DNA from: Basidiobolus meristosporus CBS 931.73 | Taxonomy: Eukaryota > Fungi > Basidiobolomycota | Length of the DNA stretch: 61,663 bases | Direction of reading: 5' to 3' | NCBI GenBank assembly: GCA_002104905.1 | Contig: MCFE01000532.1 | Location: 1-61,663, forward strand | Part shown: in pieces, positions 9,830 through 36,398 of the stretch | Numbering within the stretch: position 1 is the first letter of the stretch | Layout: every line of letters starts with the position of its first letter | The notes under the pieces: generated by a model | Told to the model about the DNA's origin: nothing | The model's input: only the letters and a program-made list of their open reading frames with translations | The model's database searches: none | Translations under genes and position numbers: made by a program

Positions 9830-10419
9830 GATTTGAGGCAGTGTAGTAATAGTGTATGATGTGTTCGCTCTAATTAAATCGCTCTGGAATATTGATCAGA
9901 TTTGATGATTTGACCCTAAGAATTGGGCAGTGCTGCCCATTATCATATGTACAAGTTACATTTCTAGCATTCAAACCCTATCCCTATTGGAGGTAAACAG
10001 TTGCTCATCACACTCGTTTCTTGGGAGCTGACAGATTATCTTTGGTGCACACTAGCATGCATACCGGTGTCCAGACACAGTTCAATGTTGGCCGTGTTGT
10101 TGTTGGTTTTCTTTATTGTCATTACAATACTAGACCATTTATACAAAAGAAAAACTTCGCTACAGGAACAAATAATACAAATATGACCTATCAATATTTT
10201 TCTCACGAGCGAGCAGGCGTGGAGTCGTTCATGAGGTTCTAGATTTTGACATGAAAAACTATTAATGGGCCCCAGAATTGAACGGGCAAATAAATGTGAG
10301 CTGGGAAAACTGTCTACAATTGAACCAATGTAGGGACTATCACATCGTTTTACGGCAAACGATGTGGAGATATTTACTCGAGATTCGAGCAAGTTAATAT
10401 TCAGCCGAGCATCAAACAA

Positions 10420-13400
10420 TCACTGCAAGGTTTTCAAAAAATTGATGATGTCGTTAAATGAATCGGCTATGGATTTTGGTTTTTCGGTGTTTGGGTCGCC
10501 GGTGGCGGCCATCTCCAACTCTGCAATGCTGGCAAATTCACATGCTTGGCTCACCGAGCCCCCGCCGATCATCTCATTGAAATGCAAGAACTCTTCTAGA
10601 ATGCTTACTAAACTCCGGACCGAACGATCCGGCAACAGGTCTATGATGAGCTTCTGGTTCGGTTCATTCTGCTTCATAAGACAGCCAAGTAAGAGGGCGA
10701 CGTACGCAACTAAAACATTATGTTCGGTCTACGATTAGGAGCACGTGATTAATACGAAGCAGTTAGAGGGGAGCGGTGATTTCTGTCGCAACATACCGAG
10801 TCCACACCGTTTTGAATTCGGGTGTATAATTCAATGAGATACTCAAGGGCAAGCTTTTTGCTACATTGGCAATGGACGGTGTGTTGCGTGTGGCACGATT
10901 CATTTGGACAAAATTCTGCTCAAGTTAGGATTGCTTCATTCTGATGGGTAATGAATAGGTACGTACCGGTCTCTCGGATTATGTCTTTGCATTCTTCACT
11001 TGCGTCCACGATATTGATCAATAAGCCAATTGATAGCAGGGTAACGTCGTACCTGGACGCTGACAGCGTTTCATTTATGCCAGTATCCGAAGATTCGATT
11101 TTGTTGCTTTGGCTGAAGGAAATGAGCCGCATGACTACACTAAGCCCAGGCTGTTCAGACACTAGATGCGAGCATTTTTCATGTTCATTCGTCAAATTGA
11201 TGAGCAGGCGAAGGACGCCGCTGATAGAATCCATCGCCTGGATCGCTTTTTGAGGGCTACCTGAGGTCCCCTCAACCTGGAAGAACAATGCTAGTATAAG
11301 AAGTCTTCTGAATAGATTCTTGTATAGAGCTACTGCGTCTTGATTGGCGGGACAAAACTGGGTTGCATTTTCGAGGATTCGTAGATAAGGCGCACTCTCC
11401 AGCAATGTCTCATAATCTAGTTTCGGCTGATTCGCATCGTTAAGCTGTTGATTCATTGTCATCAAATCTTCTTCCAAGATTCGACAAACAATGTCTAGTA
11501 TCCCGGACTCCCTAACTCTGGTCCGGGTTACTTCATCATTGCGGGATTTTCGAGAGACAATCGAGAGCAGAGTGCGGGCCGCCAAGGATTTGACGGAAAT
11601 CTGGAGATGCAGCCGCTTAATGCAAAAGCCGGTGTGAAATTGGAAAGAGAGTACACTTACCGAAGCTTCGGGTAAGACGGGTTTGGAGGTAGCGACTAGC
11701 TCGCGGAGTTCCTTGATCTGGCAGATAAGTTCGAAGTCAGCACGACGAGTATTTGATTTGCGGTGTGTATATGTATCATGCGTGCATTACCAATCTCTTT
11801 TCAGACTTAGTGGAGCCCCAATTTGGCTGAACAAGTGGGTCAGGCTCGACAGTCAACAATTTCCCCAAAAGCTCCAAGCAATGATCTTCAAGAGGCAAGA
11901 ATTCCAGGTTGCGTTTATCTTGGGTCAAAAGGTACAGCATGAATGCCCTACAGGACAGGATTGTCTATCATCAAGTTAGCACTAGTCAGAGCGAAATATA
12001 GACAGGATCACTGGAAACATACTGTGTCGTTTTGCTCCCGCAAAAGTTCATAAATCTTGGGGATAAAGTTGTGAGCACGCAGCTTCATACTAAAGCTGCC
12101 TGACAGCAACTTGCGTGTAAGCTCAAGACAACTGCATTGAAAAAACATTAACAAATGTAGGTTAGAGCAGGATGGTAAACGATGACAAACCTGGTTCTAC
12201 GAACACTTAGTGACTGCTCGGGATCTAGTCCTCCCAAAACGTACTCCATCTCGTCATTGAATCGTTTACTCTCACCAAGTTCTCTTAGCTCGTGCTGGCT
12301 TTTGAGATCCGTTGCGGTTTGCTGCACAATGATTTAATAATGATCAGTAATGCTCGAATCGTTCGATAAAAACCAACAGTACTCACATCATCATCGTCGT
12401 CGATCAAATCTCGCTCCGCTGAACCATCATCCCATCTGCTATCACCTTCAGGCAAGGTCTTTGCTCTGTGGTAACTTGGAGTGGTAGGTGCGGGTGTATG
12501 AGGCGAATGCTGCTTTCTAGCGAGGATCGACTTTCTAGGAGTTGCATCCAAGTCTGTCTTTGCGCGAGAAAACGTAGGCGGTGATAAATTGGAAGTGCTC
12601 TCAGGGGTGTCGTCCCTCTTCTGTCGATAGACCTTCGATGACTTTTTGCCCTTTGTTTTTACATCCTTTTCATGGCTATTGGCATTACTCGGTTTCTCGG
12701 CTTTGCTGTGGGATTCTTTTTTTTTGGAATCCTCCGATTCAGTTACTTCAATGTCAGACTTCATGATATCGGCAACACTTAGTTTGGAAATCTGCGACGC
12801 AGACATGTTGCTTCGAACAGAGATCCTATCGGTAAATATCACTGGTGTCCAAGTGTCTTGACCCTCTTCTTCATGAAAGCTGCCAAACAGATTGGTTCTT
12901 TTGGTTTTCGGTGTCGCGTACTCACTATCAGTGTGTGCTCGTTTAAGTGAGTGTGCAATCTTTGAACGAGCTGGGCTATTTTTGGGAGTTGTATCTTGTG
13001 TCGACTCTAAAGTAGGATTGCCAAGAAAACTTGCAAAAATATCTTCCAAGGAGTTTTGGCCCTTCTCAGAGGTATCTGTAGTGTACGCTTTGGACTCTGT
13101 GGTGGGGACTTGGCCTCTATGTCCAGATGAGCTTTCGGATGTAGTTTCAGCGATATTCGTTTCAGCACTTTGTGTAGTTCTCTTCACTGAGGAAAATGGT
13201 TTCTTCGAGGTATAATTAGTTAATTCAGCTGGTTACATTTGCTCAAGTTATTTATCTTACCTTACGCACTTCTGCCTCACTTGAGATAGGACCCTCTTTA
13301 TCCTTCGATACTTGCTTACGTTCTCTGGTTCGTTTGATTAGGGATGCATAGTTACTATTTGTCTCCGACTTTCCAACACTCTCACTCTTATCCACAGTTG

Positions 13401-32966: not shown

Positions 32967-33966
32967 TTACTCTTTGCTGAGCAATATATAGATCCCCATT
33001 ACTCCTAACAAGATCATCTTGGCTTGTGGGTAATCGTTCATCAGGATAGTGACCATTCCTAGGTATGGCATATGTCTAATCATGAGATTCAAGAGTTAGT
33101 ACGTGCAGCAGTAAGAACACCATATTCGCCCATTCACTCCGCCCCAATCGTATCCTATCCTTCTCGTACTCTTCAACACTCAATCATTGATGTGATAGTG
33201 TACTTACCCCTGGACTCTGCCAATGATGTCTTTCGGCGTAATCCAGAGTTGACCTCTGTTGTAAAGACCACGGTCGTTTACTTCATTGTGATCGCCCTTA
33301 GTCAGCAAGAAAGTCTCCTTGGCACCTTTCCTAAGGTCAAAAGTCGTGTTATTCCAGTTCACTCAGGCTCAACTCGGGCCGAACTTACTCTTCATGGACC
33401 TTCAACACTCTGTGAACAATGGGGATATCTCTTCCTTCAATCTTGAATACTGTAATGTCGCCGACTCGGACCGGCTCCTGCGACATACTCAGGAAAAGCA
33501 GGTCTCCTCGATAAAACGCTGGCTCCATACTTCCACTGTTCATTGAGACGACAAAATAAAGTAGTCACCCAAACACAGCCGCAGAGAAGTTCGAAGGGTT
33601 GAAAAAACAAGTGGTCAGTATTGGTGAACTAAGGACGCTACGAACCAGAGCACAGAAAGGCACCTCTGTGCCAGTGGCATCAAGCCGTAGCACACCGAGC
33701 CAACGCAGGAAAGTACTAACCTGAGCACAACCACGATAGGACTCTCGCTGTTAGTCCAGATGCCCATTCCTTTCCACACCATCAGTGCTGACGACACAAC
33801 CATCAACACGTTCAGAACCTGTGCAGCGAGCTATTGTGTTGTAGAAGTAACAAACAGCGACGCAAGGCTTCCGCGTAAGTAAGAGCACAGCTATTCACAA
33901 CAACGATATTGAGCTGAACAAAACCTGACGAACGCTCATACGTCTCAAGGTAGCAAGGGCTTCCAT
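32967..33966 (-). CDS. SEC11: Signal peptidase complex catalytic subunit Sec11, copy 1 (~176 aa, 5 exons)
   Basis: [35 protein letters not shown]...[25 protein letters not shown]...IPIVHRV...[16 protein letters not shown]...[21 protein letters not shown]...KE*; all four introns are GT-AG and in frame. Confidence 0.95.
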
Positions 33967-34047
33967 AGTACCGAAGTAAACGAGTAACAAGAAGTAGTAG
34001 ACTGTAGTGTGGCTTTTAAGAGTTCAACGAGGACAGACCAAACAACG
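33009..34047. repeat. Tandem duplication unit 1 (partner 34792-35857)
   Basis: Identical to the partner, including introns, except the 33266-33284 / 35049-35094 patch and one mismatch at 34012 / 35822. Confidence 0.97.
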
Positions 34048-34749
34048 TTCGACTGGAAGCTTGCAGTTTAGTAAAAGTAAGGGGGAATATTCAATGATGC
34101 TACGAAATACTTGGCTTTCATTTTTCAAAGGAAATTCTGCCACGTCAATTACGGGATTTTCGTTAGGTTTGATTCAACACCTAATTAAATTGTCATCAAA
34201 TTGTCATCAATTTGCATTGCCAAAGCTAACTAGTCCAATCTTAAACAAGATTGGCATTTCAATCCACTTATGCTGATATTAAGGCAACTACATCCTACTC
34301 TCGTAAACAACATCCATGCACAAATGTAAAGAAATAATTGGTCAGTATTGGGTCTATTTCTGGATCGCGTCTCACACTAATGATGCTACTAGTGGTGTAT
34401 CGAGTGTTTTGTTATGTCCATGATTAGTTAAGAGCTTCCAACATTCTGAAATGTAGGCGAACCCTTTTTTAAACCTTCGTTCAAATCGAATACTGAATGA
34501 TCTGCTTTCTCTATCCGTGCGTGGCAAATGTAACATTGAATGCGGTGTGTTGCGTTTATATTTCTGTGTATTTCGAGTGGTGCAATCTTGTTTGTACAAA
34601 GAGTTCTGGGACCTTTCAAATATGTGCGAAATACGATAACGTCATGATGTAGATGTTCCTCGGTGGATGCAAAATACCCAAAAGATATGGATACCGTAGC
34701 CGAGTATACTCCCAGAGCTTGACTCACTGGAGTAATGACGCAGGCATAT

Positions 34750-35776
34750 TTATTCTTTAGTGAACAGCACGTAAACTCCCATTACCACTAGCAAGATCAT
34801 CTTGGCTTGTGGGTAATCGTTCATCAGGATAGTGACCATTCCTAGGTATGGCATATGTCTAATCATGAGATTCAAGAGTTAGTACGTGCAGCAGTAAGAA
34901 CACCATATTCGCCCATTCACTCCGCCCCAATCGTATCCTATCCTTCTCGTACTCTTCAACACTCAATCATTGATGTGATAGTGTACTTACCCCTGGACTC
35001 TGCCAATGATGTCTTTCGGCGTAATCCAGAGTTGACCTCTGTTGTAAACGCCGTTGTCGTCTACTCCATTGTTGAATTGGCGGTCATTTACTTGATTGTG
35101 ATCGCCCTTAGTCAGCAAGAAAGTCTCCTTGGCACCTTTCCTAAGGTCAAAAGTCGTGTTATTCCAGTTCACTCAGGCTCAACTCGGGCCGAACTTACTC
35201 TTCATGGACCTTCAACACTCTGTGAACAATGGGGATATCTCTTCCTTCAATCTTGAATACTGTAATGTCGCCGACTCGGACCGGCTCCTGCGACATACTC
35301 AGGAAAAGCAGGTCTCCTCGATAAAACGCTGGCTCCATACTTCCACTGTTCATTGAGACGACAAAATAAAGTAGTCACCCAAACACAGCCGCAGAGAAGT
35401 TCGAAGGGTTGAAAAAACAAGTGGTCAGTATTGGTGAACTAAGGACGCTACGAACCAGAGCACAGAAAGGCACCTCTGTGCCAGTGGCATCAAGCCGTAG
35501 CACACCGAGCCAACGCAGGAAAGTACTAACCTGAGCACAACCACGATAGGACTCTCGCTGTTAGTCCAGATGCCCATTCCTTTCCACACCATCAGTGCTG
35601 ACGACACAACCATCAACACGTTCAGAACCTGTGCAGCGAGCTATTGTGTTGTAGAAGTAACAAACAGCGACGCAAGGCTTCCGCGTAAGTAAGAGCACAG
35701 CTATTCACAACAACGATATTGAGCTGAACAAAACCTGACGAACGCTCATACGTCTCAAGGTAGCAAGGGCTTCCAT
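34750..35776 (-). CDS. SEC11: Signal peptidase complex catalytic subunit Sec11, copy 2 (~185 aa), with a 9-aa in-frame loop duplication and a divergent C-terminus
   Basis: Same exon structure as copy 1 and an intact ORF; loop [22 protein letters not shown]; C-terminus [14 protein letters not shown]. Confidence 0.93.
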
Positions 35777-35857
35777 AGTACCGAAGTAAACGAGTAACAA
35801 GAAGTAGTAGACTGTAGTGTGACTTTTAAGAGTTCAACGAGGACAGACCAAACAACG
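34792..35857. repeat. Tandem duplication unit 2 (partner 33009-34047)
   Basis: Offset 1783 bp left of the loop patch and 1810 bp right of it, i.e. a 27-bp insertion. Confidence 0.97.
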
Positions 35858-36398
35858 AACGGCCATGGAAGTTTACTCTTTATTATATCCAGTAGAAGAG
35901 GTCTATGTATTTTGTTGAGTTTGGGCTCTCATAACTCGATAGAAGTAATGCCACGTTAGTGAATAACAAATACCAATTAAGTTAAAATACGTTTAGATTA
36001 GTTGACAGCAAGGCACGAGGTAGTACAAACAGTAGATGATGCCAATATAGAATACGTTGGTAGTGAGGGCTTTAAGCTTCAACTAAACAATATCTTATCT
36101 AATGCATACGGCCGAAGCTTAATTCATGGATAAACAGAATTGGTGTTTTATGCTTCATCACAATAATAACATTCCCAATTAAATCCGCTGAAAACATTGT
36201 ATTGGATGTCCAATTAATATCTTTCACGAACGCGAGAATCTCTTTTCAATAGAGTTCGATCCTCGCTGCCTTTGATTCGAACGCGCGCAGGTCCATTTGT
36301 TTTTTGCCCCCTTGTACCAGATCTAATCTTGGTCCTCAACAGTGAATCATATCACGAAATACATTGATAGTTTGAACAAGCTTCTTCAGTGTTCCATA

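Follow-up and report, generated by a model that had tools for sequence, protein, structure and literature searches.

A tandem SEC11 pair in Basidiobolus meristosporus in which one copy repeats the aspartate segment of box E

What becomes of a signal peptidase whose gene carries the segment around its catalytic aspartate twice? The ER signal peptidase complex has SEC11, a member of family S26B, as its catalytic subunit; most eukaryotes have a single SEC11. We took up the question in a 61,663-nt stretch of the genome of Basidiobolus meristosporus CBS 931.73 (contig MCFE01000532.1), referred to here as the window, which holds two SEC11-like genes in tandem, both on the minus strand. Copy 2 is the upstream member of the pair and copy 1 the downstream one. 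A first-pass annotation had reported a diverged nine-codon duplication of the aspartate loop in copy 2, at 35040-35110. We found no literature on SEC11 in Basidiobolus. The two genes are laid out as follows:

34750-35776, minus strand: coding sequence of SEC11 copy 2, 558 nt and 185 aa, with its ATG at 35776-35774 and its stop codon at 34752-34750
35735-35776, 35531-35640, 35199-35345, 34991-35140 and 34750-34858, minus strand: exons of copy 2, with boundaries transferred from copy 1
32967-33966, minus strand: coding sequence of SEC11 copy 1 (ORX88397.1, P0233), 531 nt and 176 aa, with its stop at 32967
33925-33966, 33721-33830, 33389-33535, 33208-33330 and 32967-33075, minus strand: exons of copy 1, from a spliced RNA contig

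Are both genes SEC11-type signal peptidases, as the first-pass annotation held? They are. The TIGR02228 profile (sigpep_I_arch, cutoff 51.85 bits) scores 101.8 bits on copy 1 (P0233) and 100.1 bits on the public model of copy 2 (P0142), a model that is without the nine extra residues described below. Pfam Peptidase_S24/S26 (PF00717) is matched at 25.1 bits against a cutoff of 23.3, and exon 3 of copy 2 alone also passes. The AlphaFold model of copy 1 (pLDDT 86.6, with a helix at residues 12-40) has human SEC11C and SEC11A chains as its best matches (7p2q_A and 7p2p_A; TM 0.85-0.87, identity 65-66%). The five-exon model of copy 1 is fixed by a spliced contig from run X3 that skips four CT..AC introns (GT..AG on the gene strand). 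Copy 2 had been described as intact in its reading frame, splice sites, Ser and His, and this is borne out: none of the five exons has an in-phase stop, the four introns keep their GT..AG ends, and their 469 nt match copy 1 exactly. In box D of the S26B family, His stands where the bacterial enzyme has Lys. Copy 2 has the box B Ser (SGSMEP; Ser53, 35341-35339) and the box D His (IPIVHR, His92-Arg93; His92, 35224-35222) in an exon 3 identical to that of copy 1, and its codon coordinates also place Asp113, Asp119 and Asp127/128. Searches with copy 2 sequence used its exons one at a time.

The pair differs in exon 4. Copy 2 exon 4 (34991-35140) has 27 extra in-frame nt relative to copy 1 exon 4 (33208-33330), within 35047-35100 and thus inside the interval of the reported duplication. 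These nucleotides form part of two successive units and of a patch that sets the two copies apart:

35074-35100, minus strand: unit 1, HNQVNDRQF, residues 114-122, with Asp119 (35085-35083) followed by Arg120
35047-35073, minus strand: unit 2, NNGVDDNGV, residues 123-131, with Asp127/Asp128 (35061-35056) followed by Asn
35049-35094, minus strand: the patch, 46 nt against 19 nt in copy 1 (33266-33284), an unconverted island as argued below

Both units keep N-x-V-x-D. They have 15 of 27 nt in common, a level that random 27-mers or shuffles reach in ~8e-4 of trials, and each matches the one unit present in copy 1 at 19 of 27 nt. No second copy of the insertion occurs within the window, so a local template was rejected.

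The public protein record does not contain the insertion. The copy 2 model ORX88398.1 (P0142, 168 aa, labeled "partial") reads ...HNQVND|NGVY..., skipping exactly the 27 nt at a point within 35056-35085 on the minus strand, and it ends before the last 8 codons, so that both the insertion and the C-terminal tail are missing from it. Could the 27 nt be an intron instead? We rejected this: the four equivalent placements end in GA..AC, AC..CG, CC..GA or CG..AC, and the size is too short besides. Because no placement has intron-like ends, the skip is a gap in the gene model; the insertion is concealed in the database protein, and database surveys would miss it.

Is the patch genuine? The read data at our disposal were Logan contigs of the source sample (runs X1, X2 and X3) rather than raw reads. 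The short-read contigs show two copies of the block shared between the genes, at ~1.6-1.9x the flank depth, and one contig runs from the sequence that precedes copy 1 into the tail of copy 2, in support of a real tandem arrangement. The patch of copy 2 is absent from every short-read contig of the source sample, and ~8-13% of the sampled words of 34600-36000 are missing from its runs. The 61-aa ORF that holds exon 4 of copy 2 has no homologue in a protein collection that excludes short ORF fragments. These gaps are what one would see if the patch had arisen in assembly or consensus calling, or from a collapsed allele, and the genome itself had two identical copies. Contig builders, however, pop bubbles and drop rare variants, which makes the absence of the patch expected and hence weak evidence. 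The X2 DNA contigs stop at 33325 and 35012 (gaps 33230-33324 and 35013-35134), and a break on each side of the patch is what a two-variant bubble would give. These ends lie 36-42 nt away from the patch edges, not at them. The interval 35866-36100 has no contig in X1 or X2. Sequencing errors do not typically insert 27 nt in frame together with clustered substitutions that respect codons, and the diverged tail and flanks mark copy 2 as a distinct locus. We therefore consider an artefact very improbable.

How far back does the arrangement go? Basidiobolus ranarum (JASJQH010007151.1) also has a SEC11 tandem pair, at 10001-10921 and 11338-12258 of locus L001, with the same five-exon structure. The two are ~99% identical within a near-perfect 1,337-nt repeat, and the upstream side, beside a Csm1-domain gene, is syntenic with the window. 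The species are thus alike in synteny, exons, near-identical tandem copies and an upstream TGACGTGGC element. They differ in that both B. ranarum loops are canonical (KGDNN[P/A]VDDRGLY) and both tails identical, with no island and no insertion. A tandem pair with canonical loops in this relative makes the pair a feature of the genus and the insertion specific to the B. meristosporus lineage. Among the annotated B. ranarum proteins returned, only one SEC11 copy appeared (P0039).

With B. ranarum in hand, the two units can be read for their age. Unit 2 retains the ancestral Asn and Asp-Asp states, as found in B. ranarum and in most eukaryotes, and derived His and Asn are common to copy 1 and unit 1. 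Since ancestral states persist in one unit and derived states are shared by the other with copy 1, the repeat is not a fresh slippage product. A search with copy 2 exon 4 alone against protein cluster representatives gave 21 weak matches, none with the same repeat.

Such a history sits beside near-perfect identity across most of the gene, and the boundaries of that identity are informative:

34792-35857, minus strand: block shared with copy 1 (33009-34047 on the copy 1 side), all four introns included
34750-34791, minus strand: diverged C-terminal tail of copy 2, its last 14 codons (copy 1 counterpart 32967-33008)

Outside the patch the ~1,070 nt of the shared block are identical, with 728 (5') and 257 (3') consecutive identical nt flanking it, and the block continues to 81 nt before the ATG, with a single mismatch. 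Within the patch lie the 27-nt indel and 5-8 substitutions, depending on gap placement, with perfect identity on both sides. The tails have 14 differences in 43 nt (33%), mostly at third codon positions and with five conservative residue changes. Beyond -90 upstream and past the stop codon downstream, the identity of copies 1 and 2 is at chance level. Coding and noncoding sequence are therefore identical inside the tract while flanks and islands are diverged—the pattern by which gene conversion is recognized. Identical exons and introns with old divergence outside them indicate an old duplication homogenized by very recent gene conversion, and the evidence points to the patch and the tail as unconverted islands in the conversion tract. 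A simple recent tandem duplication in B. meristosporus was rejected, as tails, 3' UTRs and upstream regions are all diverged. The locus resembles known cases of concerted evolution of tandem paralogs with unconverted islands in its perfect exon and intron identity, near-saturated flanks, tail and short patch. We infer that the island has persisted either because 27 nt of heterology form a barrier to conversion or through selection.

Has selection preserved copy 2? The first-pass annotation preferred a working enzyme to a pseudogene, and the tail bears on this in two ways. Taking both lineages together, 5 of the 14 tail changes are nonsynonymous (P = 0.003 against neutrality), which shows purifying selection. 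All five replacements fall on the copy 2 side when B. ranarum is used as the reference, however, and on the copy 2 lineage alone (five nonsynonymous and four synonymous changes) neutrality is not rejected (P = 0.18).

Which aspartate would serve as the catalytic one? That the K-G-D..D segment supplies the Asp of the triad, as first proposed, agrees with the human enzyme: the triad of SEC11A is completed by Asp122, which precedes Arg; Asp116, in K-G-D, forms a structural salt bridge with Arg97, and Asp121 is not required (10.1101/2020.11.11.378711). K111, G112, D113, N115, D119, R120, Y123 and W129 are invariant in a 60-sequence alignment. GD-x5-DR occurs in 243 of 250 fetched proteins; it is missing from five budding-yeast-type sequences (D-L/I), from the faulty public model of copy 2 and from one unrelated protein. 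The GD-x5-D spacing is found in all 248 homologues that contain box E. Two Asp-bearing units are indeed present in copy 2, but the comparisons do not support treating them as equivalent candidates: only unit 1 keeps the GD-x5-D(R) register, with Asp119 and Arg120, and unit 2 falls outside it. The Asp of unit 2 lies 15 residues from K-G-D instead of 6, a spacing absent from the 248 homologues. The register of unit 1 has its own departure, in that Tyr stands 13 residues after Asp119 against the canonical 4 (D-R-G-L-Y).

The universal GD-x5-D spacing, unit 1 as its sole match, and the position of insertions in other homologues (after D-R, as described below) together make Asp119 the likely catalytic residue and unit 2 a probable loop insertion. 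On these sequence comparisons, copy 2 probably consists of a unit 1 box E, a nine-residue loop extension and then GVYNRGQLW, with Asp119 catalytic. In the model of copy 1, D119-L122 form a short helical turn, and directly after it the luminal domain is irregular and modelled with its lowest confidence. Nine residues inserted beside the triad could also abolish activity.

Could unit 2 (DD) supply the catalytic Asp instead, or the two segments alternate? Basidiobolus would then keep two signal peptidase complexes, the copy 2 enzyme differing in cleavage or regulation or switching between Asp registers, and the patch would be under selection. Several observations lean this way. Unit 2 has the canonical NN..DD and a D-to-Y spacing of 4, and HMMER aligns it, not unit 1, with the NNAVDDRGLY of human SEC11A/C. 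The island persists in an otherwise perfect conversion tract, and the tandem pair is retained in two Basidiobolus species. Human cells, moreover, have two SEC11 paralogs that form two distinct functional complexes. SEC11A and SEC11C (PDB 7P2P, 7P2Q and 9RJB) have the fold predicted for copy 1, and they share with the Basidiobolus proteins boxes B, D and E with their Ser-His-Asp residues and the occurrence of two paralogs per genome. The human genes, in contrast, are dispersed, ~80% identical and both canonical in their 7-residue box E spacing, whereas the B. meristosporus paralogs are in tandem and identical except for the nine-residue box E repeat and the C-terminal tail.

There are also counterweights. 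HMMER prefers unit 2 because that unit runs directly into the conserved Y..GQ.W that comes next; the Arg is missing from unit 2, and its distance from K-G-D is never seen among the homologues. Residues of the S1/S3 pocket lie in boxes B-D (PMC13385932), and these boxes are identical in both copies, so a change of specificity is not obviously to be expected. The heterology of an indel can by itself be enough to stop conversion, with no need for selection, and the RNA-type run X3 has no contig with the copy 2 patch. We judge a second complex with a changed active site to be improbable; a changed function of copy 2 is possible but unsupported.

Other homologues bear on the reading of Asp119 followed by an extended loop. 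The spacing from box E to Tyr is canonical in 219 of 224 of them, and the five exceptions (+1, +2, +4/5, +5 and +11; P0001, P0011, P0012, P0051 and a Mortierellaceae cluster, P0015) all insert after D-R. The Mortierellaceae insertion, of 5 residues, is kept across the 52 members of its cluster, which suggests that it sits in that family's main SEC11 and not in a spare copy. In P0001, a metagenomic fragment, the insertion is 11 residues long and is itself a tandem repeat (RGHYNSSQDWV/GIYNPGQDWV). Like copy 2, then, the Mortierellaceae and other loop variants have 1-11 residues placed directly after the catalytic Asp-Arg; unlike copy 2, they do not repeat the Asp-bearing unit and have no second D-D motif. 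Insertions at this site of the loop are tolerated in other fungi. On whether other fungi share the insertion itself, a point raised by the first-pass annotation, the answer is accordingly divided: insertions after D-R recur, but none repeats the Asp unit, and B. ranarum is without one.

Which of the two genes is expressed? Run X3 behaves as RNA: a 542-nt spliced contig of depth 1672 carries exon 4 and the tail of copy 1. No X3 contig has the patch or tail of copy 2, in an assembly type that drops rare variants. The sole copy 2-specific X3 contig (35834-36070, depth 21.6) lies upstream of the copy 2 ATG and may represent either an extended 5' leader of this gene or an independent transcript; it covers the unique upstream region and ends ~30 nt inside the shared block. 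The upstream regions differ in one further respect:

34116-34147, minus strand: conserved 24-nt element TGACGTGGCAGAATTTCCTTTGAA, -181 to -158 of copy 1, shared with both B. ranarum copies
35950-35958, minus strand: degenerate version TAACGTGGCA upstream of copy 2, at the same distance from the ATG

With its TGACGTGGC core, the copy 1 element is 23/24 identical to B. ranarum L001 9808-9831 and 11145-11168. The ACGT core of TGACGTGGCAGAATTTCCTTTGAA resembles bZIP/UPR-type sites. The dominance of copy 1 in RNA, together with the degenerate element of copy 2, makes copy 1 the main gene and the expression of copy 2 low or unproven.

Is copy 2 then dead or dying? The insertion would in that case disable or destabilize the enzyme, the gene would owe its intact look to conversion by copy 1, and its diverged promoter would leave it hardly transcribed. 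That no RNA contig carries its patch or tail, beside the depth of copy 1, is in keeping with this, as are the lack of resemblance to copy 1 beyond -90 upstream and the degeneration of the conserved TGACGTGG element. Besides the five tail replacements, the patch has an excess of nonsynonymous changes assigned to copy 2; neutral evolution of that lineage is not rejected, and insertions of such length are very rare in the family. Against this, the frame survives a 27-nt indel and ~13 substitutions, N-x-V-x-D is kept in both units, and the tail replacements, in a transmembrane or C-terminal segment, are conservative. The tails of both lineages taken together show purifying selection, a functional Mortierellaceae SEC11 has an insertion in the same loop, and a copy 2-specific upstream transcript exists; the missing RNA contigs count for little where rare variants are dropped. 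We regard loss of function as a rather unlikely outcome for copy 2.

The account we lean toward, with modest confidence, is an old converted pair in which copy 2 is a minor paralog with a tolerated loop extension. An old SEC11 tandem pair would have been homogenized recently by conversion from -81 through all four introns, and two islands would have escaped—the last 14 codons and the 46-nt patch with its old, in-frame, diverged 27-nt repeat. In the protein, unit 1 would stay contiguous with K-G-D, so that Asp119 could complete a Ser53-His92-Asp triad and Asp113 could keep the structural salt bridge to Arg93. The next nine residues (QFNNGVDDN in an alternative parse) would lengthen a poorly ordered surface loop after the catalytic Asp. 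Copy 1 would be the main expressed enzyme, and copy 2 is predicted to be a minor paralog with weak expression, perhaps still active. The insertion taken by itself is, as far as sequence can indicate, most likely a loop extension tolerated in a spare copy whose expression is weak. As it stands the case is a curiosity. Box E spacing is near-invariant, and a paralog that repeats the Asp unit would be a ready-made probe of loop change beside the Ser-His-Asp triad; the pair also shows, cleanly and on a small scale, how a conversion tract can enclose an island.

Two further sequences resemble parts of the locus. Run X4 (organism C) contains low-depth DNA contigs from a relative that is ~90% identical over 33511-34198; the shared parts are exons 1 and 2 and the spacer that precedes copy 1, intron 2 differs, and the coverage stops short of exon 4. 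In Blyttiomyces sp. JEL0837, one annotated protein of 294 aa (P0141) holds two consecutive SEC11 units; here too a tandem pair of SEC11 genes has probably been fused in annotation.
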